Shown here piece after piece: positions 23,053 through 55,662 of a stretch of 64,000 nucleotides of DNA (the stretch's first letter is position 1; every line of letters begins with the position of its first letter). Both the position numbers and the translations under genes were made by a program. Location of the stretch: the sequence record MT366760.1; one strand, written 5' to 3'. Under the pieces are notes generated by a model, which saw nothing but the letters and a program-made list of their open reading frames with translations, made no database searches and was not told the DNA's origin.

Positions 23053-24171
23053 TTACATATCGAACATACTATCTAGGTTAGTGATAACCCCTTCTAGTGC
23101 GGATACGTCTTGAATGTCTAGTAGTCTGTCACCTACTCTAAGTTCAAGACCAATACTTTTACCTAACACTACGTCCTTAAGGTTACCCATAACAGAATTA
23201 TATTCAACGGACATATTTCTAGTTACGACTTTAGCATCACACCTAGGAGAAACCCAACCAAGCGCAACACAATCCCTATACACTGATTCAGCAGCATCTT
23301 TAAGTATGGCTAACCCGTGATGGAAGTCGCGGTATTGTCTACCTTCGTTAACTTTGATACTCAACTTAACTACGTGACCAACCAACCTTAAGAACATTAA
23401 TTCGTCTAATGTCATTACATGTGGTGGTTTATTTTCTTCTAAGGTAACCGTAACCTTATTACCCCACAAGGCTAACGAGGGGTACGACTTGTCGGAAACA
23501 CGGGTATACATACCATATTGCTCCATACCTTTGAAGCAATTAATACCCGATTGATAGAATACATCCATTTCCCGCATAGTAAGACCGTTAGTCGCCTTAT
23601 AGCATTCATTCAATTTAATAATATCTTCAATAGGGATATCAGGGTGACAACCATTAACGGGATTCGGGTTAACTGAATGCGCTCCCACTACCAAACCTAC
23701 ACACCCGTTGTTCTCAAAACCATACGAAAATTTATCAGCTAGGTGTAAACTAATGCATCGTTTCCATACAGACTCTAATCCTTTATTTTCACCCATATAG
23801 ATATTGGGTAACCCAAAATGCATACCCTGAGTCTGAACATCGGGTGCATCATTACCCACACAATGAAGGTGTATACTATCAACTTTAAGTGGTTTACTTA
23901 AAACTGATTTGAGTTCAGACACCACATTAACTCTTGGTTCTAACTCTACACGGCTACCACTGATTCCCCCACCTATTACCTTCCATTGCATACCACCAGA
24001 ACAATACTCCCTAAAATGGTTATACAAATTTTGAACATGCTCATGTGATACTTCTACACAAATCTCAATAGGTACAACGTCTTCTTTTACTTTAACTGAA
24101 TACTCACTAATACCCAGACCCTTGATAGCAGAATGAACATCATTGATAGTTACTATTGGTTGCTTAAACAT
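23053..24171 (-). CDS. Hypothetical protein
   Basis: 372-aa ORF; no family recognised. Confidence 0.6.
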   Translation of the reverse strand: MFKQPIVTINDVHSAIKGLGISEYSVKVKEDVVPIEICVEVSHEHVQNLYNHFREYCSGGMQWKVIGGGISGSRVELEPRVNVVSELKSVLSKPLKVDSIHLHCVGNDAPDVQTQGMHFGLPNIYMGENKGLESVWKRCISLHLADKFSYGFENNGCVGLVVGAHSVNPNPVNGCHPDIPIEDIIKLNECYKATNGLTMREMDVFYQSGINCFKGMEQYGMYTRVSDKSYPSLALWGNKVTVTLEENKPPHVMTLDELMFLRLVGHVVKLSIKVNEGRQYRDFHHGLAILKDAAESVYRDCVALGWVSPRCDAKVVTRNMSVEYNSVMGNLKDVVLGKSIGLELRVGDRLLDIQDVSALEGVITNLDSMFDM

Positions 24172-24449: not shown

Positions 24450-24667
24450 AACTTGTACCTTGTTAGATGCCGTGTATTAATCAAACAGAACTCACCGTTA
24501 GGGTGTACTAATAAATCCATCATACCCGCCAGAGAGCTTACTTTGGATTCACTGTCCTTCTTCGCTTGTTCAATCATTCCAATTATTATCTCTTCGAGAT
24601 CCTCCACGGGAAGCATCGAATTTTCCAGTTCTGGCATCAAGTGACTTAGATGTATTTTGTTTGCCAT
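24410..24667 (-). CDS. Hypothetical protein
   Basis: Likely start MANKIHL at 24667 with an AGGA RBS; overlaps the primase 3' end. Confidence 0.45.
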   Translation of the reverse strand: MANKIHLSHLMPELENSMLPVEDLEEIIIGMIEQAKKDSESKVSSLAGMMDLLVHPNGEFCLINTRHLTRYKLCKNKMYKPVKNQ

Positions 24668-25739
24668 TTTTATTTTTCCTATACTTAGGGGATTCCTTAC
24701 CAATATGCTTACTGCTAGTTTTATTAAGCTCCTGAAGCATTTTGATGAATTTTATTTTCATGTTTCCAGGGTCAACCTTTGCTGCTTTGACCGTAATACC
24801 TTTCTTATCAGCAATGCGTTTAGCTTCTTTATATAAGTTCATAACCATCACTTTACGTTCTGAACCCAAATCAGCTTTTAAATCACGTGTAGCACCGACG
24901 CCTGCAACGTCGCCGTCCATACATAAGACTATATCACAACCCAAGGACAGCAATAGTCGTTTCTTTTTCTCAGACCACGACTGTACACCCAACACGGCAA
25001 CGGCAGGTATGCCATACTGTATTAAGCGTAATGCATCCCGTTGACCCTCAACGACAACAACCCACTTATACTTCCCCTTCTTAAGCATGTTTCTAACTAA
25101 ATCAAAAGGGAATAGACCCTTGGTACGCAGCGGACTATCATCAGATATCACATAACTAGGTGAACCAGACTTCTTTTCAAATCGAGCTTTGATAGCCGCA
25201 ATAGTTTTACCCCTGACATCAACGGGCATTATAAGGAATGGACACTTCTCACGTCGGTCGATACCAACTTCACACTTGAGTTCCCTTATCAAGTCACCAC
25301 TAATACCCCGCCATTCCTCATTGATGAACGGTAACGCCATTGGCATCTGCCATGTGTCCATATAATCTTGTAGCGAAGTACCCGACGTCGATAACAAAGA
25401 CTTCTGGATTTTAGACATAGCATGTGATGAGAAACCTGCTGAATCACGCTTGTTCTCTTTTTGGTCAATCTTTTCTAAACCGTACTTTTCAGCGAGTACG
25501 TTCCATGGTGAGGAGTGACCACAACCTAAACAATAGACCCAACCAATAGGTGCCCTACCATCTGGAGCAACATATATACCACAAGATGGTGACGAATCAC
25601 CTGCGTGGAACGGGCATAATATCTCGATTGTCTTATACGTGTACTTTTTATACCCTGGAATCTTCTCTATTTCCTTGAGTATTTTTCGGTGTGCCTTACT
25701 GACACCTTCCGACACTTCATATACTTGTCGTGACATCAT
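24570..25739 (-). CDS. dnaG: DNA primase (CHC2-type Zn finger + TOPRIM)
   Basis: CPFHAGDSSPS...YCLGCG Zn finger; VVVVEGQRDAL and VLCMDGDVAG TOPRIM motifs. Start moved to MMSRQ. Confidence 0.88.
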   Translation of the reverse strand: MMSRQVYEVSEGVSKAHRKILKEIEKIPGYKKYTYKTIEILCPFHAGDSSPSCGIYVAPDGRAPIGWVYCLGCGHSSPWNVLAEKYGLEKIDQKENKRDSAGFSSHAMSKIQKSLLSTSGTSLQDYMDTWQMPMALPFINEEWRGISGDLIRELKCEVGIDRREKCPFLIMPVDVRGKTIAAIKARFEKKSGSPSYVISDDSPLRTKGLFPFDLVRNMLKKGKYKWVVVVEGQRDALRLIQYGIPAVAVLGVQSWSEKKKRLLLSLGCDIVLCMDGDVAGVGATRDLKADLGSERKVMVMNLYKEAKRIADKKGITVKAAKVDPGNMKIKFIKMLQELNKTSSKHIGKESPKYRKNKNGKQNTSKSLDARTGKFDASRGGSRRDNNWND

Positions 25740-25801: not shown

Positions 25802-26854
25802 ATGGCAGCCAAACGTGGCTTTGGTTCGTTGAAGGGTCAGCGCATTCCCACGGTGGAAGAGACATCGAAAGAAGTGCATGACGTCATTCAGGGATTCAAC
25901 CTACTCTTTGAAAATGCAAAGAAAACAACTGAAGTGCGTGTTATAGCAGAAACACGTGTAACTGAATTACACCCCTCGTCTTTCCCATTCTGTTCAACAT
26001 ACTACGCATTAGACTACCTGATGCACGGTGACGTATTCGAACGCGAACAGGAATGCTTGATGGGTAACTATTACACTGGCATAGGTACTGTCGTTCACGA
26101 AGTTATTCAGAACGCAATTGGTGAAGCACACATGCTTGACCCTAAGAAACCTCTAGACCATTACCTTATTGGTGATTACAAGTGTAACAAATGTGGTCAC
26201 GTCCACAAGTTCTCTTCGTACCCTAAGAAGTGTAAGAAGTGTAAGCAAAAGAAATGGCGGTTCTTCTATGATGAACTAGCTGTATGGTGGGGAAAGAAGA
26301 CAGTTGGTCACTCAGATGGTTTATACTACTTTGGTGGCAAATACTGGGTTATAGATTATAAAACCACATCGTCCTTTGCTGTGATGCAGCACACTAACTC
26401 TGGTGGTAAATACTTCCCATACGACCACAACGTTCGTCAGATAAAGTCATACTGTGCTATGCTTGAAGAGAACTACAACGTTAAAATAGGTGGATGGATT
26501 CTGGTTTACGTTCCACGCGACAACTATAATAGACCAGTCGCTGTAGGTGATGACATATCTAAGAAAGAGAAGTCGAGACTTAAAACAATGCTCGATGGTT
26601 ACGACCTAAACTTCCGTCGTGTACGTTCTTTCCCCGAACAAACTTCCAAAGCGGCTATAATGAAGCTTGCTAAGAAGATAATTAAAGACAAACCCTGTCA
26701 GTGTATGAAGACGTATGAGAAGAATATGAAAGACCCTTACTTCGATTGCCCATACGCTGAAAACGGAACGTGCTTCAACAAGCAGAAGCTACTTAAACAA
26801 TTCGAGAAGCATATCAAGAAAGGTGTTTTAATCGACGTTAAACAGCTTGATTAA
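25802..26854 (+). CDS. Cas4-like / PD-(D/E)xK exonuclease with a Zn ribbon
   Basis: HPSSFPFC, GTVVHE, GHSDG...VIDYKT, QIKSY motifs; CxxC pairs; C-terminal Cys cluster. Confidence 0.8.
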   Translation: MAAKRGFGSLKGQRIPTVEETSKEVHDVIQGFNLLFENAKKTTEVRVIAETRVTELHPSSFPFCSTYYALDYLMHGDVFEREQECLMGNYYTGIGTVVHEVIQNAIGEAHMLDPKKPLDHYLIGDYKCNKCGHVHKFSSYPKKCKKCKQKKWRFFYDELAVWWGKKTVGHSDGLYYFGGKYWVIDYKTTSSFAVMQHTNSGGKYFPYDHNVRQIKSYCAMLEENYNVKIGGWILVYVPRDNYNRPVAVGDDISKKEKSRLKTMLDGYDLNFRRVRSFPEQTSKAAIMKLAKKIIKDKPCQCMKTYEKNMKDPYFDCPYAENGTCFNKQKLLKQFEKHIKKGVLIDVKQLD

Positions 26855-26861
26855 GCAATCT

Positions 26862-26869
26862 TGTAAAGT
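26862..26869 (+). promoter_or_regulatory. TGTAAAGT promoter-like motif
   Basis: Intergenic variant of the TGTAAATA motif. Confidence 0.45.
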
Positions 26870-26907
26870 AATTTCGATTATTCACCACTTATGCAAAAGG
26901 TAACGAT

Positions 26908-27540
26908 ATGAATACTACCACTCAAGAAAATTCAAACGAGCGTAACGACCCGTTCAAAAATTGGGCTCCTGCGCAAGCAACACCAGAAGGCGAACGCCAA
27001 CTGACTTTCCGCGAAGCCATTTCACGTAATCAAGGTAAAGCGGGTACAACAGACGGTCACTACCGTCATAATATGTTTAACCGCACCGGTAAGATCTACC
27101 GTGCTACAAACTACCATTCTGCAATTGATGAGCACATGGAAGTTCAGACTTTCCTTAACTCAATTGCAAACCGTCGCTTTAATACCTACTTCCATATGTT
27201 GAAGGGTACCGCGTCGCGTGGTCTACTCGTTAAAGACTGCATCCGCCTAGAGGCTCACATTGCTGTACGTCACGATGAGAAGGGTCGAATCATTCCGCCT
27301 AGCTATCGCGTAGTAGACTCCCTTGAAGTACGACTAATAGACAACCGTATTGTCCCTGTTGACGCTCAGGGTAACGAACTAACTAACAATCAAATGTTAG
27401 ACCTATTCGTTACTAAATGCCGCAAGACTGATACACCAACTCAAGATGTAACTATTCATCTTATGGGTCGCTGTACTGGCGTTGGTACTAAACAGCTTAC
27501 ATCAGGTGAAGCAACTGTAGAGGTTCGTATCAATGAATAG
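26908..27540 (+). CDS. Hypothetical protein
   Basis: 210-aa ORF with RBS. Confidence 0.6.
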   Translation: MNTTTQENSNERNDPFKNWAPAQATPEGERQLTFREAISRNQGKAGTTDGHYRHNMFNRTGKIYRATNYHSAIDEHMEVQTFLNSIANRRFNTYFHMLKGTASRGLLVKDCIRLEAHIAVRHDEKGRIIPPSYRVVDSLEVRLIDNRIVPVDAQGNELTNNQMLDLFVTKCRKTDTPTQDVTIHLMGRCTGVGTKQLTSGEATVEVRINE

Positions 27541-28051
27541 TGATCTACTAATCGGTTGGAAAGAAAACGGTGAAGTAACCATCGGTCTATTAAACCCACA
27601 AGAAGACTTGCTTACTATAGATATCTATAATCCAAAGGGTAAGTCAGTAACTGAAGTAGCGCAGGTAATTACGGGTTGGCTACTAGAATCAACAGACTTA
27701 CTCAGCCACTACGGTCTAGACCAACACCTACAAGCATCCGTACCCAACACGGTGGAATACGACAAGTTAGTACCACCTACTGTTACAGGGTTCTATACTA
27801 ATTTACCCCAAGCCTCTCAGATTGCTCAATCTGAAGAAGAACTACAACGTATGGCTATCATTGTTATGCGTATGTTCTTTAAACGTTCCGAATTCGTGTG
27901 GGAAGGTCGCTGTACCAAATTCGCAGAAGCTGTATTCAACGCTGTATGCAGCGAAGTTAACTTTACCTATATCCCACGCGCTCTACAAATGATAGAGGGC
28001 ACTGATAATGGCGAAGACAAAGAACAAAAGCAAAGCGAAGACAAATCGTAA
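27533..28051 (+). CDS. Hypothetical protein
   Basis: 172-aa ORF coupled to its neighbours. Confidence 0.55.
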   Translation: MNSDLLIGWKENGEVTIGLLNPQEDLLTIDIYNPKGKSVTEVAQVITGWLLESTDLLSHYGLDQHLQASVPNTVEYDKLVPPTVTGFYTNLPQASQIAQSEEELQRMAIIVMRMFFKRSEFVWEGRCTKFAEAVFNAVCSEVNFTYIPRALQMIEGTDNGEDKEQKQSEDKS

Positions 28052-28565
28052 GGCTATTATAGTTGCCGGAGGTAGAAAGTTTGGCAACTATAAACTTGCT
28101 TGCAAAGAAATACGTAAGTTCGCTAAGAAACTAGGTGTACCCCTAGACAACCTAGAGATAGTTTGTGGTATGGCTCTCGGTGCTGACAACATGGGTAGAT
28201 GTTTCGCTATGGAGTTCTTAGATGGACGTGTAGTTGAAATGCCTGCTGATTGGAAGAATCTAGATGCTAAACCCTGTTTAATTAAATACAACAAATATGA
28301 AGAACCCTACAATGCTCTAGCGGGTACTAATCGAAACGAGGACATGGCTAATGTCCCCAACGTTGTCGGATGTTTATGCTTCTGGGATGGTAAATCCCCA
28401 GGTACACAAGACATGATGACACGTGCTGTTAAACGTCGTAGGACTATGCAGCTTAAAGTCGTCTACTACGATAAGAAATTTAAAAAGTGCAAACCACCTA
28501 AGTCTGGTAAACCAAAGAAATCCCTTTTTTCCAAATCGGGTCGCTCCCAAAAACACATAAGGTAA
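28008..28565 (+). CDS. SLOG-superfamily (DUF2493/YspA-like) nucleotide-binding protein
   Basis: IIVAGGRKF, VCGMALGAD, PADW, RNEDMA and FWDGKSPGT motifs. Confidence 0.85.
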   Translation: MAKTKNKSKAKTNRKAIIVAGGRKFGNYKLACKEIRKFAKKLGVPLDNLEIVCGMALGADNMGRCFAMEFLDGRVVEMPADWKNLDAKPCLIKYNKYEEPYNALAGTNRNEDMANVPNVVGCLCFWDGKSPGTQDMMTRAVKRRRTMQLKVVYYDKKFKKCKPPKSGKPKKSLFSKSGRSQKHIR

Positions 28566-28569
28566 CACC

Positions 28570-28905
28570 ATGGAACAACATCTAACTACACCGCAAGAAG
28601 TAACATGTCCTGAATTAGAAGGTCATCCACGTGCCTCTGAAATTAAACGTGCAGTATTTATTTCGGCAGCGGACATCACCAATACTCCAGAAGACGAATT
28701 AACTTTCGCTCACGAGACTCATAACTACACCAATGATAACCTAGACCTTAACTTCGACAGCCTTGATACTGTAGAATTCATTATGGCTCTAGAAGAAGAA
28801 TTAGATGTAGATATCGCGGATGCCGATGTAGATCGTATGCTGAACGAAGGTGGTTCGCTAACGCTTGCTAAATGGTGTTCTTACCTAACCACACTGCTCG
28901 ACTAA
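28570..28905 (+). CDS. acpP: Acyl carrier protein
   Basis: LDLNFDSLDTVEFIMALEEELDVDIAD contains the DSL phosphopantetheinylation motif and AcpP-like helix II; acidic. Confidence 0.85.
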   Translation: MEQHLTTPQEVTCPELEGHPRASEIKRAVFISAADITNTPEDELTFAHETHNYTNDNLDLNFDSLDTVEFIMALEEELDVDIADADVDRMLNEGGSLTLAKWCSYLTTLLD

Positions 28906-28908
28906 CAT

Positions 28909-29919
28909 ATGAAGTTTGAACGTCACGATTACCTGATTGTAAAAGATGAGAAAGACCGCAAGCATCTAATTCAAGTCACGGGTAATTCAAAAGCAGAAGT
29001 AACTGGCGCACTAGAAAAGTCGCGCCACATCGAAGGTAAAGAAACTGAGTACATGACAGTTGCCGTTGAAGACGTAATTATCAATCTGGGTAATAAACCC
29101 TATGTTGGTATGGTCTATGGTTGTCGGGTAAACCCGTTACAAAACCAACTATCCTGTAACTTAGGTGACATCTATATCTACCGTGATAACGTTAAGAAGA
29201 AAGAGAAAAAGGCACTAGTTAAAGCAATTAATAGCGCACAAGCCGTCTTGAAGAATCTAGGTCTACACCACTTTCAGGAAGAACTACGTTTTGAAGTTCA
29301 TCCCCAAAAAGGTAAATACGTTGGTTGGTATACGGTGTTCTCAGCTAAGTCTGAACGTTTTGATATGGTGACTCTTAAACCACACACCTTTGACCACCGT
29401 GAACTAATGAGTATACTCTATCATGAATTCGGTCATGGTCTAGAACATCACTTGTTCACCCCTGAGTTAACTGAAGCTTGGATTAAGCTTTACCATTCTT
29501 TCACTACGGTGACGATGGCTACTAAGAAACAAGTGGAAGAAGCCCGTAAAACAGTAATTGAACAGGGCTCACACGGATTGGCTCAACAAGTGATGGAAGA
29601 GTTTGAGTCATCACTAATTGATGTCTGTGTTGGTTACATTGCTGAGAACCATTACATTGACCCTAATCGTCTCGAAATATTAATTGAGCAGGGTCATGAC
29701 TTAGTTGGTTTATGGCCTGAAACACCAATGCCAGTTACTTCAATTCAGAGTCCTATCGGTGAATACTCGGAAACTAACCCGTCCGAGTTTTTCTGTGAAG
29801 CACTTCGTATCCATCTTGATGGTAGTGTTAAACTACCTAAGAAGATTAATAAACTCCTAACTAAAACACTTAATCAATTACGTGGTCGTAAACCACAAGT
29901 TGAAGAAGACGAGGAATAA
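28909..29919 (+). CDS. Zincin-type metallopeptidase domain protein
   Basis: LYHEFGHGLEH (HExxH) and EYSETNPSEFFCEAL. Confidence 0.65.
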   Translation: MKFERHDYLIVKDEKDRKHLIQVTGNSKAEVTGALEKSRHIEGKETEYMTVAVEDVIINLGNKPYVGMVYGCRVNPLQNQLSCNLGDIYIYRDNVKKKEKKALVKAINSAQAVLKNLGLHHFQEELRFEVHPQKGKYVGWYTVFSAKSERFDMVTLKPHTFDHRELMSILYHEFGHGLEHHLFTPELTEAWIKLYHSFTTVTMATKKQVEEARKTVIEQGSHGLAQQVMEEFESSLIDVCVGYIAENHYIDPNRLEILIEQGHDLVGLWPETPMPVTSIQSPIGEYSETNPSEFFCEALRIHLDGSVKLPKKINKLLTKTLNQLRGRKPQVEEDEE

Positions 29920-29924
29920 TCCTA

Positions 29925-30881
29925 ATGGCACTTACTAAAGAAAAAGCTAAGAAGATTTTCGATGAACACCTAGCAGCTCGCAAAGACGGTAATTTCATGA
30001 CTATTACTGAAGACGCCCTAGCTTTGTTAACCAATTCTCAACGTCTGAACTATTACCAACATGGTTACGACCATCTGGGTAAACAAATCGACGGTCTAGG
30101 CAACACTATCATGCAACATTTCTCTGACGAAATGGGAACTGAACTTGATGGTAAGACTATCGGTATCAACGGTGCTTGTGAAATGGCTAGTGACCTACTA
30201 GCTACACTACCCGCTCACCGTGAGAATACTAAGAAAATCGCTGAACTAAATGTATTCCTGCAAGAATCAACTAACGCACAAGTTGGTAAAGGAGTAGTTG
30301 CTGAAGTTATCCGACTACTCACGCCTAAAGACGACGAAACATTCGTTCTTAACGCAGGTGAAGCACTATTTGGTTTCGCAGGTTGGTTAACATCACGTGA
30401 CGAAGTATCTAAGTTTGGTTCTTCCATTTGGGCTACCCCTGCCGCTGATATGGTTGCTGAATTTATCAAAGCTAACAACCTATCAGACACGGAAATCCGC
30501 GATGAATGGTCGGAACATCTGGTTCACCCAACGTGGACATTAGCTGATTCAGGTTACCCAGAAGAATCAATTACAGCCTACTTCTCACGTGGTGACGAAG
30601 ATCTACCACTCCTACCACTAGCGTGTTACCTGTGGGGTATTATCGACGATATTGATACTGCCTTCGACGTTTGTAAAGATAACGACGTTGCACTACGTGA
30701 ATCAGTCCAACACCTACAGAATAAGCGATGGAAAACAGGTGTTACAACGGATGGTCACCGCCTGTTATTGGGTAACATTAACGTACCTAAACACTACGTG
30801 GAGGGTACTGACTACTCCCTATCAACGTTCCCCGAAATTGCATTAGAAGCTGAAACTCCTAGTATCGGCACTGAAGAATAA
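29925..30881 (+). CDS. Hypothetical multidomain phage protein
   Basis: 318 aa; AGEALFGFAGWLTSR and LWGIIDDIDTAFD segments look like small phage domains. Confidence 0.6.
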   Translation: MALTKEKAKKIFDEHLAARKDGNFMTITEDALALLTNSQRLNYYQHGYDHLGKQIDGLGNTIMQHFSDEMGTELDGKTIGINGACEMASDLLATLPAHRENTKKIAELNVFLQESTNAQVGKGVVAEVIRLLTPKDDETFVLNAGEALFGFAGWLTSRDEVSKFGSSIWATPAADMVAEFIKANNLSDTEIRDEWSEHLVHPTWTLADSGYPEESITAYFSRGDEDLPLLPLACYLWGIIDDIDTAFDVCKDNDVALRESVQHLQNKRWKTGVTTDGHRLLLGNINVPKHYVEGTDYSLSTFPEIALEAETPSIGTEE

Positions 30882-30889
30882 TGTAAATA
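30882..30889 (+). promoter_or_regulatory. TGTAAATA promoter-like motif
   Basis: Immediately after a stop codon, upstream of the TGT-like gene; a CTAATTTTAAT motif also occurs at 30936. Confidence 0.55.
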
Positions 30890-30970
30890 GTTGGTATGAA
30901 CGCTAGCCGAGGACGGATGAATGTTCTCGGCTTTTCTAATTTTAATAACCCGATAACTGAGGGAGCACTC

Positions 30971-32587
30971 ATGGCACGTAAAAAGAGTAGCACTCCGCAA
31001 CCTGGTGAATACAACTTAGTTCCCGCAGGATTGTTTAGTGTTAACCATAGCGGGATGGGGTTGTATGTTCGTTACTGTAAGAACCCTAACCGTATTGATG
31101 TTGTAGAGATGTCGCCACGACACGTTTATATCAAGTGTCCTGACCGAGACCTCTATTTGGTCAGTGCTGCACACCACGCATCACACCTACGACCATCAGC
31201 AGGTACATACGATAAGTATGTTAACCTTAGCCTATTCCACGATCTCAACGCTGTAGACCACGACATCCCTTACTACATGGTGAATTATACTCAGTCACTA
31301 GGTAAAGAAGACAAGTCCCATGGGAACCGCAGACTAGACCCACGACCAATCGGGGAAAAACAAAGCAAAATTATTTCGGACTCAGGCGGCTTCCAAATTC
31401 TAATGGGACGCACCGAATACATTGACCCTCTGCAGATCATCCAATGGTATAACGAAAACGTTGATGTCGGTCTAATTCTCGATATCCCAACATTCGTTAA
31501 CAAGGATGGGTTACTCGACCGTCTAGCACGTATCCAACAAAAGAATACCCAAATCATGTTGGACAACAAACGTGACACCCTTGAACTAATGAACATCTTC
31601 CATGGACACACACCGGAGGATGTACGTAAATTCCGTGAAATAACTGAACACCCTGACATCAACCGACTAGCGTTTGGTGCATCTTACTTGGATACCGTTA
31701 TGTCTAGTCTTGGTAAGATTGCTGAAATGATGCACACGGGTAAGAAGTATGACCAGTACCACATGTTGGGCGTTGCAAACCTGAAGCAAGTATACCCACT
31801 TATCTACATGGCTAAGAAGGGATTCGCTCCAGAAATATCTAGTGATGCTTCCACATGGCTACAGGAATCTACTTCAAAAGGCTACTACCACCAAGAGCAC
31901 ATTTCGGAACCACCTGGCTTCATTAAAATGTTCGACAAGGTAAATGCACCATCACCCTATAATACACTACCATGTAATTGTCCTGTGTGTAGCAACATTA
32001 AATACACAGATGCACTATCAGTGATTAATGGTAACGTGACAACATTCCTCATGGCTCACCATAACATGTATGCCTACAATAATGTCGTGCAAGCGATGAA
32101 AGGTATCATGGCGGAAGCATCCCTTAAGGAAATTAAGGAACTCGTTGCACGCCAATTCAGAACACGTAGTGGTAAGGATGAAGCACTCAAATCATTCGAC
32201 TTTATCGAATCTATTTCTGAACATGGTGTTGATTCCTCGTACAAGAAGTTCGGCTACTACTTGAACTCTATGAAGAGTAACATGTCTAGTAACAAGACAC
32301 TCTTCGGTAAGGAGGAAGAGGATGTTGGTGAAAACGGTATCGTTCAGATTGCTGATGACGACCCACGCCTGATTCGCACACTTGAAGTATGTGATATTTA
32401 CGAAGGTAAAACTGAGCGTAAACATGGTGCTAAAAATGCCAACGCGAAGAAAACGGGACACTTGAAAGCTAGCTCTGGTGCTAAGGGAACGGCGGGTAAA
32501 CGTAAGAAACCTAAAAAGGTAAAGGCGAAAGCTAAAGACACTAAGAAGGTGACTACCAATGCCAAAGCAAAGAGTACGAAAAAGTAA
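30971..32587 (+). CDS. tgt: Queuine tRNA-ribosyltransferase (TGT) / DpdA-like 7-deazaguanine transglycosylase
   Basis: SDSGGFQ, LILDIP, HMLGV and SSDASTW catalytic motifs; CNCPVC...H Zn site; Lys-rich C-terminal tail. Start at MARKK after GGAG. Confidence 0.8.
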   Translation: MARKKSSTPQPGEYNLVPAGLFSVNHSGMGLYVRYCKNPNRIDVVEMSPRHVYIKCPDRDLYLVSAAHHASHLRPSAGTYDKYVNLSLFHDLNAVDHDIPYYMVNYTQSLGKEDKSHGNRRLDPRPIGEKQSKIISDSGGFQILMGRTEYIDPLQIIQWYNENVDVGLILDIPTFVNKDGLLDRLARIQQKNTQIMLDNKRDTLELMNIFHGHTPEDVRKFREITEHPDINRLAFGASYLDTVMSSLGKIAEMMHTGKKYDQYHMLGVANLKQVYPLIYMAKKGFAPEISSDASTWLQESTSKGYYHQEHISEPPGFIKMFDKVNAPSPYNTLPCNCPVCSNIKYTDALSVINGNVTTFLMAHHNMYAYNNVVQAMKGIMAEASLKEIKELVARQFRTRSGKDEALKSFDFIESISEHGVDSSYKKFGYYLNSMKSNMSSNKTLFGKEEEDVGENGIVQIADDDPRLIRTLEVCDIYEGKTERKHGAKNANAKKTGHLKASSGAKGTAGKRKKPKKVKAKAKDTKKVTTNAKAKSTKK

Positions 32588-33023
32588 AAACCAAAAATCA
32601 GACGAGGGTTTGAGTGTTGCTAAACTAATACAGACCACTCGTCGATTCCGATACTTAGACGCATCATCAAGGGACGTTCGCTTATACCGACCACTTCGTA
32701 TGAAGGGCGAGAACGGGGTACGCATTGAGGCTTCAGCTAAATCGCGTATTTCGAAGCAAAATAGAAACCCACAAGTACACAGATGCTCTATGGAATGTAT
32801 TAATGGCTATGACCGCTTAACACATAAGAAAGCACGCGTTAAGGTTTCTTGTGATTGTGAGTTCTTTACATACACATGTGAGGTCGCACTATATCGCTAT
32901 GGAGCTGCTGATATCATCTTTAGTAATGGTGAATACCCGTACTCCACAAACCCCCGTGGTTTACCTATTATGTGTAAGCACCTTTTATCCATGGCTAAAG
33001 CTATTCAGAAGAAAGGGTTCTGA
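32559..33023 (+). CDS. SWIM-type Zn-finger protein
   Basis: KVSCDCEFF...TNPRGLPIMCKHL (CxC...CxH). Confidence 0.7.
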   Translation: MPKQRVRKSKNQKSDEGLSVAKLIQTTRRFRYLDASSRDVRLYRPLRMKGENGVRIEASAKSRISKQNRNPQVHRCSMECINGYDRLTHKKARVKVSCDCEFFTYTCEVALYRYGAADIIFSNGEYPYSTNPRGLPIMCKHLLSMAKAIQKKGF

Positions 33024-33028
33024 TTATT

Positions 33029-33976
33029 GTGTCAGACTCTATGAGCTACCTAAAGGCTAACGACCCCAATGAGATGCAGTTGTCATCTAATCAGATATTC
33101 ACATTGTTTGACGACCTGATTTATCGAGCAGTAGACTGCCTGATTGATAACTGCGACTTCGTTGACAAATCATTAGCCTCAGTATTATCTTGGTATAACG
33201 CCAACAAGAGAAGACGTTTAAGTAGATTAGTCCGACAAGAAGCTGTCAGCTTAATGATGAGCTACCTGATAACACCCGACCGCGAACTTAAGAAAGAAAT
33301 ACTCCGCGAGTTGATGTTAGAAAGGGGTTTAATGTTAGCTATACTAGAACAGTTCCTTGTAGTAACTAAGAACTACCAAACGTGTGTCCACCGAACAATA
33401 AATTTTAACTCTCGTTACTATAATTCGGTGTCCCAAGAACGCAGGTCTATTGAGAGACAAGTCGGTGTTCTAAAGGATGGGAACTTGTATTGCGCAATCA
33501 ACACTATTGACCTGTGGCATTCTACAGCTATAGATATGCGTAATAGGATAATGCGTAAACACACTAGATACATCTTTAGTAAAGTTCGTTCAGAAGGTAA
33601 TCGGGCAACCACGCCTATAGACTTGAATGACATGGCTCAGAATTATGTAGTCGCACTACTCAAGGCTATCTATAAATACTTACCTGAACGTGGTACTTTC
33701 CAATCGTACCTTGAATACTGGTTACTTGATGCTAAGACCAACAGTGGTTCCAAACACTATTATGGTTTAGCCTTTGATGTGCCCAGTATGGAAACTTTAG
33801 AAAAGAATTCACTCTCAAATTTATCTATCCCTCTATCAGCAGAAGAAGTTCAGATGGTGTCTACTCATGGCGTCGAACAGGAAGTTTGCGATAACTCGCA
33901 TATCCTTAGAATCCGTGAGTTAGCTTTATACGCAGATCCACTTGGATATGCACGTGAAGCGTTAAACATCGACTAA
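33029..33976 (+). CDS. Sigma70-like transcription factor (region 2)
   Basis: DLNDMAQNYVVALLKAIYKYLPERGTFQSYLEYWL resembles sigma region 2.2-2.4 (DLIQEG..GL.KA..KFDP.RG..F.TYA.WWI). Confidence 0.65.
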   Translation: MSDSMSYLKANDPNEMQLSSNQIFTLFDDLIYRAVDCLIDNCDFVDKSLASVLSWYNANKRRRLSRLVRQEAVSLMMSYLITPDRELKKEILRELMLERGLMLAILEQFLVVTKNYQTCVHRTINFNSRYYNSVSQERRSIERQVGVLKDGNLYCAINTIDLWHSTAIDMRNRIMRKHTRYIFSKVRSEGNRATTPIDLNDMAQNYVVALLKAIYKYLPERGTFQSYLEYWLLDAKTNSGSKHYYGLAFDVPSMETLEKNSLSNLSIPLSAEEVQMVSTHGVEQEVCDNSHILRIRELALYADPLGYAREALNID

Positions 33977-33982
33977 TGTTTC

Positions 33983-33990
33983 TGTAAATA
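33983..33990 (+). promoter_or_regulatory. TGTAAATA promoter-like motif
   Basis: Intergenic, upstream of SSB. Confidence 0.6.
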
Positions 33991-34028
33991 AATATCACAA
34001 CACAAGCTAAACTCAATTGGAGAATAAC

Positions 34029-35024
34029 ATGGCTGAAAGAAAACGTGGCTTTGGCGGTTTAAAGACTGGAGGCGACAAAGCTAAACGTCTAGAAGATCAG
34101 GTAGAAATGTTGACACTGCCGAAGGACGGTTCGTGGGTTACAGTTCGTATCATAGGTGATGTTCATTCCACCGCTATCCGTTGGATTGACATCATTACCC
34201 AGAAAGGTCAGATCTCAATTCCTAAAGTAGCGCTGAACTACGATGCGGATACCGACGACTTCGATTCAACAATTGAAGATCCGTACGAAGAAATTTCTAA
34301 CCCTCAACGTTTAAGTACAACGCACTACGTTAACGTTCTAGTTCGTGATCTTGAAGACACTGAACCTAAGAAGAACAAACCAACATCAGGTGAGAAAAAG
34401 TCGGGTTTCAAAGACAAGAACTCTAAGTCGTGGACGCCAATTCGTGTACTACGTGTTCCTAAAGGTCTTGCGGGTAAACTGGCTAGTCTTATCGCCCTTA
34501 ACAAGCACAAGACTAAGAAAGGTACTGAAGCATTCGAACTATCCGACATCGAGTATGGTTGTGATGTTCACGTATCCTTCGACGATAGTAAGTCGCCTAG
34601 TGAGAAGTACTCAGTTCAAAAAGCAGAACATACTCCGCTGTCTAAAGCTGAACAGAAACTACTAGTATGGGACATCGCAACCAATCTAACCCCACCTGAA
34701 TCATTGGAAGTAGCTCGTAAAGAAGCTGAAAACTTGGAAGGTAAAGCTCCAATGGACGAAGAAGACGACGGTGACGAAGACGATTTCGATGTCAAAGACA
34801 AAAAGAAAAAGTCTAAAAAGTCTAAGAAAGACGATGATAAGAAGTCTAAAGACAAAAAGTCTAAGGGTAAGAAAGACTTCGATATCGACGACGATTTCAA
34901 AGACGATAAAAAGTCTAAAAAGTCTAAGAAAGACGACAAAGCTAAGTCTAAGAAAGATGACGGTAAAAAGTCTAAGAAAGACGACAAAGCTAAATCTAAA
35001 GACAAAAAGAAAAAGAAGAAGTAA
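34029..35024 (+). CDS. Single-stranded DNA-binding protein (gp32-like) with an acidic then Lys-rich tail
   Basis: VTVRIIG, HYVNVLVRD, LSDIEYGCDVHVSFD...KYSVQ gp32-like pattern; lies upstream of the recombinase. Confidence 0.65.
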   Translation: MAERKRGFGGLKTGGDKAKRLEDQVEMLTLPKDGSWVTVRIIGDVHSTAIRWIDIITQKGQISIPKVALNYDADTDDFDSTIEDPYEEISNPQRLSTTHYVNVLVRDLEDTEPKKNKPTSGEKKSGFKDKNSKSWTPIRVLRVPKGLAGKLASLIALNKHKTKKGTEAFELSDIEYGCDVHVSFDDSKSPSEKYSVQKAEHTPLSKAEQKLLVWDIATNLTPPESLEVARKEAENLEGKAPMDEEDDGDEDDFDVKDKKKKSKKSKKDDDKKSKDKKSKGKKDFDIDDDFKDDKKSKKSKKDDKAKSKKDDGKKSKKDDKAKSKDKKKKKK

Positions 35025-36066: not shown

Positions 36067-37578
36067 ATGGCACCTAAAAAGAAACCGGCAGGTAAAGCCG
36101 TGGACACTGAAGAAAAGCCAAAGAAAACTCCTAAGAAAGCAACGGCAGCAAAGAAAACGTCGCCAAGTAAATCAGCCTTAGCAGTATCCGAAGCACTTCA
36201 AGACACTTACGACTTACTTGGTGTGTCTAGCCTGTTAGACGATATGGAACGCGAGTTTAAATTGGCGTCGTCCTCGACTGATACGGATGCACGCTCATCC
36301 ACATGTGTATCATCTGGTCTACTTATGACTGACTTAATGTTGGCAGGCGGTATCTATGGTGGTGGTTGGTACACAATACTCGGTCCTGAGGGCTCATGTA
36401 AAACTACTCACCTAATGTGTTGGTTAGAACAGTTGTTTATGTCAGATATCCCAATCATTCAGCATTGGGATTACGAAGGTTCTACAACACCTGACTATAT
36501 GCAGTCTATCCTAGAAGGTCGTGGTTCTAAACTTGACGTTAAACGTCTATTCGGTTTACGAGATCCCGACCATCCAGAGAAATGGGCAGTTGAACCCCGT
36601 ATCCGTTACTATCCCGAATCAGAAGGTGAGCGTTTCTACAAAGCAGTTGGTAACCTGCTTAAACGTCTACCAGACAAACTATGTATCAATGGTATCTGGT
36701 ACTTAGGGTTCGAACGTACCAAACAAAACATCTCACGACTAAAAGGTAAGTACGATACTAAACTTAGCACTAAGTATGGTCGCCTAATGGTGGAGTCACC
36801 TAATGGTGGTCAGATGCAAGCACTATTCATCCTTGATTCGTTCCCTGCTATGACTGCCGAAATCGACGATGAAGGTGAAGGCTCTAACGGTCTAGCACTT
36901 GATGCACGTATGCATTCTAAGCACTACAAGAAAGTACGTTCCAAACTGAAACGTAAGAATGCTACATTGGTCGGTGTTAACCAAGTCCGTCTAAACCCAG
37001 GTGCTCGCTTCGGTAACCCTGAATATGAGCCGTGTGGTAACGCGATTAAACACGCATCTGATGCTCGTATTCGTCAAGCTCCTCGTGCAATTCCACACGG
37101 AACGGGTAGCATCGAAGAAGAAGACTCATGTCTAATCGAAGGTGGTACTGACCAATACAAATACATCCATATGCGTGCTGTTAAGAACAAGCTTGGTGTA
37201 GACAACCTAGAAGTTTGGCACCGTCTATGGATGGTTGATGGTGAGGGTAAAGGTCGTGGTATTGACCCCGTGTGGGACACATTCCAGTACCTTAAGTCAA
37301 CAGGTCAGTGTGACGGTACTATGAAGAAGATGAACATCACGCTTCATGACGGCTCATTCGAGATATCTAAACTTTCATGGTTCGACTTCAAGTGTCTAGT
37401 ACTTCTAACTGGCGCTGATCTACGCGCTCATTGTGAAGAACTTGGTATCGACAAAAATCCTAAACTTCGTGAGAAGTGTTTCAAGCAGATTGCTTCCGGT
37501 GACGGTATGAAACACTACTTCAACACCCTGAATGGCGCGTTGTACGACGAAGAAGAGGAAGACGAAGACGACCTCTAG
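36067..37578 (+). CDS. recA: RecA/UvsX-like recombinase
   Basis: Walker A GPEGSCKTT, FILDS Walker B, VGVNQVR..PGARFGNPEYEPCGNAIKH. Confidence 0.9.
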   Translation: MAPKKKPAGKAVDTEEKPKKTPKKATAAKKTSPSKSALAVSEALQDTYDLLGVSSLLDDMEREFKLASSSTDTDARSSTCVSSGLLMTDLMLAGGIYGGGWYTILGPEGSCKTTHLMCWLEQLFMSDIPIIQHWDYEGSTTPDYMQSILEGRGSKLDVKRLFGLRDPDHPEKWAVEPRIRYYPESEGERFYKAVGNLLKRLPDKLCINGIWYLGFERTKQNISRLKGKYDTKLSTKYGRLMVESPNGGQMQALFILDSFPAMTAEIDDEGEGSNGLALDARMHSKHYKKVRSKLKRKNATLVGVNQVRLNPGARFGNPEYEPCGNAIKHASDARIRQAPRAIPHGTGSIEEEDSCLIEGGTDQYKYIHMRAVKNKLGVDNLEVWHRLWMVDGEGKGRGIDPVWDTFQYLKSTGQCDGTMKKMNITLHDGSFEISKLSWFDFKCLVLLTGADLRAHCEELGIDKNPKLREKCFKQIASGDGMKHYFNTLNGALYDEEEEDEDDL

Positions 37579-54489: not shown

Positions 54490-55659
54490 ATGGCAAAGAA
54501 CAAACCTTGGGATTTAAAATACCGTCCACGTGTACTAGAAGACACCGCAGGTCACAGAGCTGTAGTTAACCAACTTACTCAGATGATTCGTAACGCTGAA
54601 GACACACTACCTAATGCCTTGATGTTTGTAGGTGGTTCCGGTCGTGGTAAAACAACGCTAGCTCGTATGATTGCACGTTACCTTAACTGTGAAAAGGGTA
54701 CAAGTTGTGGTAAGTGTGATTCGTGTAAAGCTATTGATTCTGATTCACACCCAGACTACGCTGAATACAACGCTGCTGAACACCGTGGTATTGATGCTAT
54801 CCGCTCAATCACTGCCAAGGCTAAATTTAAGCCTCGCAACAAGGTTCGCGTAATACTACTCGATGAATGTCACATGTTGACCAAGGAAGCAGCGAACGCT
54901 CTATTGAAACCACTTGAAGAACCACCTGCGGATACAATATGGATCTTGGCTACTACCAACCCAGAAATGATTCCAAACTCTAAAGCGGTCTGTGGTCGTT
55001 GTGCTGTGATGAACCTAGCCGAGCCAAACCCTAAAGATATTGCTAGCCGACTAGCTGACATTGCCAAAGCTGAAAAGATCAAAGTGTTCACTGACGAAGC
55101 CCTACTCAAACTGGCTAGTGCATCTGGTGGTCACATCCGTGATGCAGTTAAGATGTTGGAAGCTGCATGGCGATTAATCGAACAGTCTGGTAAAGCCAAG
55201 AAGCTCAAGGATAAAGAGCTTAACAAATTCATTGATGACGTCACAACTAAGCTACAGGCTGACGACATCGAAATGGATGCGATTGCTATTAAGATCCTAG
55301 TGGGTATCTACACGGATGATGTCTCTATGATTATTAGCGCCATCATGGATACTAAGGACTACGTCCCACTAGCAATCAAGATGATTTACCTTAACAAGTA
55401 TCTCATGTATACTGCATCAGGTTGTACCAATTCTAAATATGTATGGCATACACCGACCAACAAGAAGTTCATTGGGCTTATCAACAAATCTGAGTCGTGT
55501 AAAGGTATCACCAAACGACCAGATGAAGTTGTTCGTGTACACGACGCAATCATCCAACTACGTCACGCACTTGTTACAACGGCGGGTGTAGATGGTTCAG
55601 ATCTATATATCACACGCCTTGGTCAACTCGGTGTTTCTACTAAGAAAAAGAAGAAGTAA
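54490..55659 (+). CDS. dnaX: DNA polymerase III gamma/tau-like clamp-loader ATPase
   Basis: LKYRP, GGSGRGKTTLAR, LNC...CGKCDSC Zn module, LDECHMLT..AANALLKPLEEPP. Confidence 0.9.
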   Translation: MAKNKPWDLKYRPRVLEDTAGHRAVVNQLTQMIRNAEDTLPNALMFVGGSGRGKTTLARMIARYLNCEKGTSCGKCDSCKAIDSDSHPDYAEYNAAEHRGIDAIRSITAKAKFKPRNKVRVILLDECHMLTKEAANALLKPLEEPPADTIWILATTNPEMIPNSKAVCGRCAVMNLAEPNPKDIASRLADIAKAEKIKVFTDEALLKLASASGGHIRDAVKMLEAAWRLIEQSGKAKKLKDKELNKFIDDVTTKLQADDIEMDAIAIKILVGIYTDDVSMIISAIMDTKDYVPLAIKMIYLNKYLMYTASGCTNSKYVWHTPTNKKFIGLINKSESCKGITKRPDEVVRVHDAIIQLRHALVTTAGVDGSDLYITRLGQLGVSTKKKKK

Positions 55660-55662
55660 TAC

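Follow-up and report, generated by a model that had tools for sequence, protein, structure and literature searches.

A short N-terminal peptide shared by a gp32-type SSB, a Cas4-like nuclease and an RNase HI of Vibrio phage GR7B

Two genes with the same N-terminal peptide

The window investigated here comprises 64,000 nt out of the 208-kb genome of Vibrio phage vB_VcorM_GR7B (GR7B; MT366760.1). The relevant features are:

24570-25736, minus strand: DnaG-type primase, divergent neighbour of the nuclease gene (Toprim Pfam, PHROG 47, annotation)
25802-26854, plus strand: Cas4-like PD-(D/E)XK nuclease, 350 aa, with a Zn-ribbon insert and four conserved Cys (PHROG 1706/298, AF2, Foldseek)
25811-25834, plus strand: nuclease motif KRGFGSLK, residues 4-11, in a disordered tail
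28909-29919: conserved HExxH peptidase between the nuclease and SSB genes (PHROG 17197)
34029-35024, plus strand: gp32-type SSB, 331 aa (PHROG 15004, AF2, Foldseek)
34041-34064, plus strand: SSB motif KRGFGGLK, residues 5-12, in a disordered tail
36067-37578, plus strand: UvsX/RecA-like recombinase, two genes downstream of the SSB gene and a candidate alternative partner (PHROG 97, annotation)

The translation of the window gives MAAKRGFGSLKG as the N-terminus of the nuclease and MAERKRGFGGLKTG as that of the SSB; the octapeptides KRGFGSLK and KRGFGGLK are identical at seven of eight positions. This likeness had been claimed in an earlier note on this DNA and proved exact when both coding sequences were re-read. 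Both starts agree with the GenBank annotation, and each ATG is preceded by a GGAG/GAGG Shine-Dalgarno sequence. The claim that the two carriers have unrelated folds is also corroborated by Foldseek, namely a gp32-type OB fold for the SSB and a Cas4/PD-(D/E)XK fold for the nuclease.

The SSB consists of an N-terminal peptide, an OB core (residues ~25-240) and a Lys/Asp-rich tail (~241-331) and thus displays the three-part layout of gp32 with a short basic N-peptide, core and charged C-tail. Its AF2 model (pLDDT 89 overall, below 50 for residues 1-14) best matches the RB69/T4 gp32 core (2a1k, 1gpc, 8gme) with a probability of 1.0, E-values of 3e-5 to 9e-4 and TM-scores of 0.45-0.57; judged from the model, the core of this SSB adopts the fold of T4 gp32. 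The gp32 B-domain spans residues 1-21 and contains the “LAST” motif KRKST. The GR7B peptide differs in sequence (GFGxLK), and (Lys/Arg)3(Ser/Thr)2 is absent from its N-peptide ERKRGFGGLKTG, which exhibits a K/R pair and K-T only. Another difference is that the GR7B SSB lacks the structural zinc site (His/Cys3), reading IEDPYE versus C..CPYC of PaBG-like orthologues. The N-peptide resembles a conserved internal block of the SSB (K-[ST]-G-F-K-D) at three of ten positions, and we gave no weight to this pair as an analogue of the two LAST copies of gp32.

The AF2 model of the nuclease (pLDDT 74.6 overall, below 50 for residues 1-11) matches Cas4 SSO0001, MGME1, RecE and lambda Exo as well as 4ic1, 7mi4 and 8d3l. 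The residues D172, D185-Y-K187, Q213, Y217, C64, C299, C316 and C324 are invariant in its orthologues. The Cas4/RecB-like signature of D..[DE]xK, QxxxY and four cluster-type Cys is present, which marks the protein as a predicted nuclease with a putative Fe-S cluster. PDB sequence searches with the nuclease and with the SSB returned no match.

The divergent arrangement of the primase and nuclease genes is also annotated in GR11A, Aura, Lu11, PaBG and HRDY3. Not only GR7B but also Aura and PhiXhv-12 encode the PHROG 17197 peptidase at a position between nuclease and SSB. The SSB gene is immediately followed by the recombinase gene in NCTB, BcepSauron, Lu11, PaBG, RSL1, SNUABM17, HRDY3 and Motura; in GR11A the recombinase gene comes two genes after the SSB gene, as in GR7B.

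A third carrier of the peptide is encoded outside the window, namely an RNase HI (PF00075) with the N-terminus MAGFGKINP in GR7B and MGFGKIK in the sister phage GR11A. Within the 38-residue extension that precedes the PF00075 match, only GFGKI is conserved; it is identical in both phages, followed by a poorly conserved linker. Among the best 40 of 768 phage RNase HI records (GR7B and GR11A aside), all alignments start at residue 4 or later, most at about 23-44 and none at the start of GFGKI, indicating that the tag was added to a generic domain. The RNase H of Aura lacks an N-terminal tag.

Each of the three carriers works on ssDNA or replication intermediates. The [KR]-G-F-G-x-[LI]-[KN] peptide is a short linear motif in their flexible N-terminal tails: it lies in disordered segments outside the folded domains of SSB and nuclease, forms a conserved island with diverging flanks in the RNase HI of GR7B and GR11A, and occurs on three unrelated folds. 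We found no earlier description of this shared N-terminal peptide in the literature. A Tat signal (RRxFLK plus hydrophobic h-region) was rejected, as the nuclease continues with GQRIPTVEETSK and the SSB with TGGDKAKRLED, neither of them containing a hydrophobic stretch; for the same reason the membrane, which the earlier note had listed among the possible partners, is excluded. A true Tat-type N-terminus elsewhere in the genome is an unrelated look-alike of different appearance (MTRRGFLGVLTAAAV, record position 200538).

Rarity, conservation and co-variation of the motif

A six-frame search for [KR]RGFG.[LIVM][KR] in the window and in the whole 208-kb genome retrieved two sites only, the N-termini of nuclease and SSB. 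The scan of the proteome and of related phages for [KR]RGFGxLK, which the earlier note had proposed, shows the strict motif to be unique to these two genes within the GR7B genome and retained in GR11A. An identity of at least 7/8 within the first 16 residues was observed for 2 of 29,403 gene pairs, compared with 0.025 expected from composition (greedy gene calls of the GR7B proteome). The second pair, MA[TN]PLKQLK, is not kept in GR11A, for which reason the composition null is too optimistic.

In GR11A, the motif is present on both nuclease and SSB with synonymously changed codons. This retention of the residues across synonymous codon changes documents selection on the peptide rather than on the DNA, and at the level of sequence comparison the conservation is the decisive evidence that the motif is real. 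A DNA- or RNA-level signal was rejected, because the 14-nt identity AAACGTGGCTTTGG of GR7B is lost in GR11A and synonymous codons differ between the genes; judged by the codons, the 14-nt match between the GR7B nuclease and SSB genes is incidental.

The SSBs of the jumbo-phage clade around PaBG, Lu11, NCTB and Aura bear an N-terminal peptide of the [KR]GFGx[LI]K type, and the nucleases of the same clade have MxxFxxLK versions that follow the SSB of their own phage. Related N-termini are thus carried by orthologues throughout the clade. The SSB family consensus is phi-x-x-phi-K-[TP] and has F and K at +4. The Phe is near-invariant in both families, with F7 of the nuclease conserved in at least 90% of the orthologues (consensus MxxFxxLK). 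Phage-specific parallels between the two families are found in Aura (MKGFGKANIG / RKGFGATNAG) and in the lineages G006 (MFKNLKPKVG / KGFKGLKPKTG), G020 (VFKELASRIKT / VFKGMGSIKT) and L048 (RGLDDISP / RGFDNIDP). In a permutation test on start-agnostic windows from 31 lineages, the phages' own SSB-nuclease pairs outscored shuffled pairs (z 2.6, p 0.007), a modest effect from a statistic that ignores phylogeny. The two families largely stem from one set of phage records.

The correspondence is looser elsewhere. The branch of BcepSauron, RSL1 and Motura combines an acidic SSB peptide (GxDFDxVKT) with a nuclease that starts with M-x-I-L-K-P, which reduces the likeness to phi-x-x-phi-K. A clear nuclease motif was not found in several lineages (L022, L041, L051, G004), and the SSBs of Aura and PhiXhv-12 harbor the motif 14-25 residues in from the terminus.

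When proteomes were scanned for an N-terminal GFG-type motif, the hits in GR7B were confined to the three carriers RNase H, nuclease and SSB, and those in NCTB to the nuclease and the SSB. When the N-termini of ~220-245 genes each of GR7B, GR11A and Aura were ranked by the 10-mer of their own SSB, the nuclease was the top non-self hit. This BLOSUM ranking missed PaBG, where the SSB motif begins at the initiator Met and greedy calls are poor in the GC-rich genome; by eye, its MFANLKPKK fits the GFxxLKPK type of SSB. Three matches to looser patterns were treated as chance: a 259-aa protein of GR7B (MFTPIKG) without homologue in four relatives, its sigma factor (MSYLK[AT]ND) and a 547-aa protein of GR11A (MALPNGFSSLK) whose motif is absent from GR7B.

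Proposed docking on the SSB and alternative explanations

The earlier note had proposed a docking motif for a common partner such as a clamp, helicase, scaffold or membrane. The docking part is sustained by disorder, three folds, island conservation and partial co-variation, but the list of partners is not: the SSB itself is likelier, because it is gp32-like and the N-peptide of gp32 binds a neighbouring core. Our tentative preference, held at somewhat less than even chances, is that a gp32-type cooperativity peptide has been copied onto partner enzymes, which would dock them on SSB-coated ssDNA.

Considering fold and layout, the SSB peptide may be the counterpart of the N-terminal “B-domain” of gp32. 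It would reach the neighbouring ssDNA-bound SSB and make binding cooperative. Nuclease and Vibrio-phage RNase HI appear to bear a copy of the same peptide and would therefore be able to occupy a free acceptor site on the SSB, in the core or the acidic tail, at the end of or within the SSB-ssDNA filament. The nuclease might thereby be placed at resected ends and recombination intermediates, and the RNase H at lagging-strand RNA primers. The T4/RB69 system provides the precedent of a short basic unstructured peptide followed by a gp32-fold core and a charged C-tail. The B-domain attaches to the core of the next gp32 molecule on the DNA (PMC12893549), which creates cooperativity (PMC12893549, PMC3012046); its removal unmasks a site on the core, and gp32 without N-peptide binds T4 RNase H tightly, which means that the same site of the core serves both partner enzyme and N-peptide (PMC3012046). 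In contrast to T4, GR7B has one peptide on the SSB and on two enzymes. T4 RNase H contacts gp32 by its folded C-domain, and we know of no T4 partner enzyme with a copy of the gp32 N-peptide.

Several observations count against docking on the SSB, namely the dissimilarity of the motif to KRKST, the acidic SSB branch, the lineages without a clear nuclease motif and the modest co-variation statistic. The AF2 monomer of the SSB, whose own N-peptide is not docked in cis, was also entered on this side, an observation that is by itself uninformative.

A more specific version, which we consider doubtful, is that the enzymes plug into the vacant acceptor at one defined filament end, i.e. filament-end capping by peptide mimicry.

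A different common docking hub for the three proteins, such as the phage-encoded beta-clamp, the UvsX-like recombinase, the helicase or primase, or a host protein, is rather unlikely. In favour of such a hub are the hydrophobic F...L spacing, which is typical for pocket-binding peptides, and the gene order, in which the primase gene is next to that of the nuclease and the recombinase gene follows the SSB gene at a short distance. With regard to the clamp, GR7B, GR11A, Aura, NCTB and PaBG encode a divergent beta-clamp, and T4 RNase H contacts its clamp by an N-terminal PIP-like peptide (PMC3012046); both facts also weigh against docking on the SSB. Clamp-binding peptides (PIP box, QL[SD]LF) are likewise terminal hydrophobic short motifs common to unrelated replication and repair enzymes, and in T4 a phage RNase H is already known to bear one at its N-terminus. 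However, the GR7B motif lacks Gln, has a different spacing and fits none of the consensus sequences QL[SD]LF, QLxLxL and Qxxhxxaa. Conventional clamp-like C-termini occur elsewhere, on the Aura RNase H (KNSLF) and a 251-aa protein of NCTB (SDSLF). The DNA polymerase is an obligatory clamp client, but the motif is present neither at the N- or C-termini of pol A in GR7B, GR11A, NCTB and PaBG nor at its N-termini in 16 of the 18 IMG/VR lineages examined. The polymerase was rejected as a fourth carrier: that of GR11A starts with MFGKLDY, but the pattern in 16 other lineages is M.K..[HY]V[DE]F.YK[YF], which forms the first strand of the folded domain. Finally, the gp32-type N-peptide has a known self-binding role; to our knowledge, an SSB is not a clamp client, and there is no precedent for a gp32-type SSB that binds the clamp via its N-terminus.

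The peptide is improbable as a nucleic-acid-contacting arm without protein partner, in which the Gly-flanked Phe would stack on a base and Lys/Arg bind phosphate, giving each carrier extra grip on ssDNA or ss/ds junctions. [KR]GFGx[LI] recalls RNP1 (K-G-F-G-F-I) of cold-shock OB domains, and all three carriers work on ssDNA or RNA-DNA hybrids; RNP1, however, operates within a folded beta-sheet and not in a free tail. The lysines of the gp32 N-peptide are thought to touch DNA (PMC3012046), but in the RSL1 branch the SSB peptides are of an acidic DFD type that would repel it, and phage-specific parallel variation of SSB and nuclease is unexpected for a generic DNA contact.

We give still less credence to a regulatory tag, i.e. 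a protease site or N-terminal modification that would time the abundance of the three proteins, with the HExxH peptidase or host ClpXP/Lon as candidate proteases. The motif is terminal and disordered, and the conserved peptidase is encoded between nuclease and SSB in GR7B as well as in Aura and PhiXhv-12, but no evidence connects it with these substrates and the gp32 analogy accounts for the SSB peptide without a tag. The internal position of the motif in the SSBs of Aura and PhiXhv-12 disfavours N-end recognition. A coincidental short match without shared function is highly improbable: the MA[TN]PLKQLK pair demonstrates that such pairs arise and several lineages lack a clear nuclease motif, but the conservation in GR11A despite codon changes, the third carrier, the near-invariant Phe of both families and the parallel variants in distant lineages speak against it.

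A possible wiring of an SSB hub by a shared peptide

SSBs are organising hubs for replication, recombination and repair, and their known mode of recruitment is an acidic C-terminal tip that fits into pockets on the partners. The bacterial SSB-Ct (DDDIPF) is, like the GR7B motif, a short terminal peptide in a disordered tail, and it gathers many genome-maintenance enzymes around the SSB, including RNase HI and exonucleases. In contrast to this acidic C-terminal peptide, the GR7B motif is basic and N-terminal, and it is shared by the SSB and its putative partners, which implies one acceptor site. The C-tail of T7 gp2.5 is another terminal peptide of a phage SSB that serves both self-interaction and partner recruitment, but it is C-terminal, acidic, a DNA mimic and not copied onto partners.

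A peptide common to the SSB and its likely clients would hence represent a different wiring of the hub, in which clients compete with SSB-SSB contacts. If filament-end capping were true, it would amount to a polarity-specific delivery of the resection nuclease and RNase H to ss/ds junctions that evolves by simply adding an eight-residue tag. Because the tag is that short, it could be used as bait, as competitor peptide or as a signature for further phage clients, and it would offer a testable handle on the assembly of the replication and recombination machinery in the poorly studied PaBG/Lu11/RSL1-like jumbo phages (group 2.2).

The shared N-terminal peptide in phage GR7B

The genome of Vibrio phage vB_VcorM_GR7B (GR7B; MT366760.1), which infects Vibrio coralliilyticus, comprises 207,758 bp and matches the window with 100% identity; its record position 124,001 corresponds to window position 1. 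Its only close relative in the phage collection searched is the sister phage vB_VcorM_GR11A (GR11A), with ~74% nucleotide identity across the matching parts. The earlier note had drawn attention to a match between the N-termini of a Cas4-like nuclease and an SSB, and we confirmed seven of eight identical residues (KRGFGSLK, residues 4-11, versus KRGFGGLK, residues 5-12). Both start codons agree with the deposited annotation and are preceded by a Shine-Dalgarno-like GGAG/GAGG.

Carriers of the peptide and the genes between them
Window 25802-26854, plus strand: Cas4-like nuclease, N-terminus MAAKRGFGSLKG
Window 26908-33976, plus strand: intervening block with genes for a YspA/SLOG protein, an acyl carrier protein, an HExxH peptidase (PHROG 17197), a TGT/DpdA-like protein and a sigma factor
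Window 34029-35024, plus strand: gp32-type SSB, N-terminus MAERKRGFGGLKTG
Record 110821-111471, outside the window (L094:10821-11471), plus strand: RNase HI of GR7B (PF00075, E 2e-30), N-terminus MAGFGKINPDQGK
L100:8637-9296: RNase HI of GR11A, N-terminus MGFGKIKEGCK

The pattern [KR]RGFG.[LIVM][KR] occurs in the six frames of the window only at the nuclease and SSB sites, and a degenerate DNA pattern retrieved the same two sites from the whole GR7B genome. In the greedy GR7B proteome of 243 genes, two of the 29,403 gene pairs share at least seven of eight residues within the first 16 positions, compared with 0.025 expected from composition-matched random N-termini. The second pair, MA[TN]PLKQLK (8/9; record 36918 and 53699, both on the minus strand), is located in two non-homologous proteins, namely, an acidic protein of 512 aa and a 170-aa protein adjoining the clamp and polymerase genes, the latter of which is itself conserved in the related jumbo phages Aura, NCTB and PaBG. 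The GR11A orthologues do not retain this motif, and the pair probably reflects chance; the composition null is thus too optimistic and the argument must rest on conservation.

Both GR11A orthologues of the nuclease and the SSB retain the peptide (MSGKRGFGSLKG and MANRSRGFGGLKTG). The two GR7B genes have 14 identical nucleotides in common at the motif, and the same residues are encoded in GR11A by differing synonymous codons (CGC/CGA, TTT/TTC, GGC/GGT, CTG/CTT, AAA/AAG), which rules out a DNA-level signal and documents that the conserved object is the peptide, with selection at the protein level. The GR7B proteome contains five GFG.[LIVM] matches, of which three are at the extreme N-terminus of their protein, and a moderately strict N-terminal pattern retrieved only RNase H, nuclease and SSB in GR7B and only nuclease and SSB in NCTB. 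A 157-aa protein (record 200538-201011, plus strand; N-terminus MVNNAKMTRRGFLGVLTAAAVSTTL) is a phage-encoded predicted exported protein with a typical twin-arginine (Tat) signal, unrelated to the motif.

Three carrier proteins and their gene neighborhood

The 350-aa nuclease matches PHROG 1706 (Cas4-like) and PHROG 298 (exonuclease), and its AF2 model (pLDDT 74.6) matches Cas4 SSO0001, MGME1, RecE, LHK-Exo, lambda Exo and the Cas4 subunit of Cas4-Cas1-Cas2 complexes. Orthologue alignments revealed invariant residues (D172, D185-x-K187, Q213..Y217 and the four cysteines C64, C299, C316 and C324) as well as a CxxC..CxxC insert. The motif lies within residues 1-11 of the model, where the pLDDT is below 50.

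The SSB of 331 aa matches PHROG 15004 (annotated as SSB) and lacks a sequence-level match in the PDB. The top PDB structural matches of its AF2 model (first 255 residues; pLDDT 89, pTM 0.82) are the gp32 cores of RB69 and T4 and the gp32-Dda-dT17 complex, all with a probability of 1.0. The GR7B protein exhibits the gp32 layout of a short N-terminal peptide, a core and a long Lys/Asp-rich tail, and the motif is located within residues 1-14 (pLDDT <50). PaBG- and NCTB-like SSBs (L013, L008) have C..CPYC cysteines where gp32 has its zinc site, and those of GR7B and GR11A do not; the Vibrio-phage lineage has apparently lost the site. The SSB of Motura (L020:571-2085) ends with DDDIPF like the bacterial SSB-Ct, those of PaBG (L013), Lu11 (L012) and HRDY3 (L018) terminate in W-D-D-D(D)E or WDD, and the GR7B protein has a poly-Lys C-terminus but an internal DFDIDDDF. 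The C-terminal tails of these SSBs thus seem to bear their own putative acidic-aromatic docking tips.

The third carrier was found when the GR7B and GR11A genomes were assembled from fetched pieces and their N-termini scanned. The catalytic domain of this RNase HI starts near residue 40 after an N-terminal extension of 38 residues, in which GFGKI alone is well conserved between both phages (55% identity overall). Homologues were retrieved from 768 phage records; apart from GR7B and GR11A, none of the best 40 aligns from the GFGKI start, as all alignments begin at residue 4 or later, most of them at ~23-44. One of them, the orthologue of Aura-like Pseudomonas phages, begins directly with the domain. 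This absence is indicative of a tag that was added to a generic enzyme within the Vibrio-phage lineage.

In GR7B, a DnaG primase gene is followed by the nuclease-to-SSB block and by the gene of a UvsX-like recombinase at window 36067-37578, two genes downstream of that for the SSB. In several relatives, the primase and nuclease genes are likewise neighbors, and the recombinase gene closely follows the SSB gene. The genes of the intervening block are also annotated in GR11A, and in Aura and PhiXhv-12 the nuclease and SSB genes likewise flank those for the peptidase and the sigma factor. A 372-aa protein adjoining the primase (window 23053-24171, minus strand) terminates in NLDSMFDM, which recalls the clamp-binding tail of the RB69 polymerase; it matches no PHROG, and the six-frame ORFs of GR11A, Aura, NCTB and PaBG contain no homologue.

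Parallel variation across the jumbo-phage clade

A scan of the proteome and of related phages, as proposed in the earlier note, located the motif in both GR7B proteins and both GR11A orthologues, and related N-termini throughout the clade. According to tblastn, the nuclease and SSB families are both present in the same clade of jumbo phages, namely, Aura-like phages of Pseudomonas putida, Xanthomonas PhiXhv, NCTB, BcepSauron, Motura, Lu11, PaBG, HRDY3, phiRSL1 and the Erwinia Alexandra/Y3 groups. This clade corresponds to "group 2.2" of Iyer et al. (PMC7824862) and the "Lupandier" group of the PaBG paper (PMC7412058).

SSB N-termini were sampled from 12 GenBank phages and 67 IMG/VR loci, with start codons on metagenomic contigs picked by rule and greedy gene calls that are rough for GC-rich genomes. 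They represent a basic GFG type ([KR]GFGx[LI]K, KGFxxLKPK, VFKGMGSIKT, SGFGxLQPR) and an acidic DFD type (GxDFDxVKT, MDLDDAKT) with the common skeleton phi-x-x-phi-K-[TP]. The nuclease consensus is MxxFxxLK, with a Phe that is at least 90% conserved in one alignment. The two peptides of one phage resemble each other in a manner specific to the lineage.

N-terminal peptides of nuclease and SSB from the same phage or IMG/VR lineage
Aura: nuclease MKGFGKANIG, SSB RKGFGATNAG
NCTB: nuclease MRNFGTIK, SSB GRGFGSID
IMG/VR L048: nuclease RGLDDISP, SSB RGFDNIDP
G006: nuclease MFKNLKPKVG, SSB KGFKGLKPKTG
G020: nuclease VFKELASRIKT, SSB VFKGMGSIKT
G014: nuclease MFGDLNP, SSB GFGNIQP
PaBG: nuclease MFANLKPKK, SSB of the GFxxLKPK type

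When all N-termini of a genome were scored against its own SSB 10-mer, the nuclease ranked first among non-self proteins in GR7B, GR11A and Aura. For the 31 lineages retained after deduplication at 60% SSB identity, a start-agnostic permutation yielded a score of 515 for own pairs versus 462 +/- 20 for shuffled ones (z 2.6, p 0.007, uncorrected for phylogeny), a modest signal that blends clade-level and fine-scale effects. In the DFD-type branch, as in several divergent contigs, the resemblance is faint or missing. In lineage G009, a motif-like LFTVLRPKK closely precedes the first canonical start codon of the nuclease (L156), which indicates either an unusual start or a miscalled one, and the nuclease frames of G022 (L162) and G002 (L164/L165) are broken by in-frame stops (TGA and TAA).

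Candidate partners of the peptide

The N-terminal domain of gp32 binds to the core of the neighboring ssDNA-bound monomer and thereby confers cooperativity (PMC12893549). When this peptide is removed, gp32 binds T4 RNase H with high affinity, suggesting a shared region of the gp32 core for the peptide and the partner enzyme (PMC3012046). Given the gp32 fold and layout of the GR7B protein, the simplest reading is that its N-terminal peptide would be a cooperativity element, too, of which the nuclease and RNase HI would carry a copy. Both enzymes could then dock on SSB-coated ssDNA, and their substrates would be SSB-covered.

As a different common partner, a clamp is a serious alternative, because a divergent beta-clamp is encoded by these phages, in GR7B at about record 55360-56511 on the minus strand, and because the RNase H of T4 contacts its own clamp via an N-terminal PIP-like peptide (PMC3012046). 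However, the motif fits neither clamp consensus, and it is missing from the N-terminus of the phage DNA polymerase in the lineages examined and from its C-terminus in the four complete genomes checked. Moreover, conventional clamp-like C-termini are present elsewhere in the clade.

Proteins with a C-terminal [ND]SLF
L107:1363-2025, minus strand: RNase H of Aura
L118:4061-4816, plus strand: 251-aa protein of NCTB (PHROG 19006)

Both ends look like the beta-clamp-binding tip QL[SD]LF, suggesting that conventional clamp motifs operate in the clade. The peptide also resembles the cold-shock RNP1 motif KGFGFI and might alternatively represent a direct DNA-contacting arm, but this would leave both the acidic SSB variants and the phage-specific parallels between nuclease and SSB unexplained. 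A protease or modification tag is a rather improbable alternative, and pure coincidence is unlikely because of the conservation of the motif, its third carrier and the family-wide pattern.

Full-text searches and published analyses of this phage group yielded mentions of the Cas4-like nuclease and of the gp32-type SSB but none of the shared N-terminal motif. Recruitment that centers on an SSB and relies on a short terminal peptide is as such known; GR7B differs in that the peptide is present on the SSB and its putative clients alike, which we rate as the new element.
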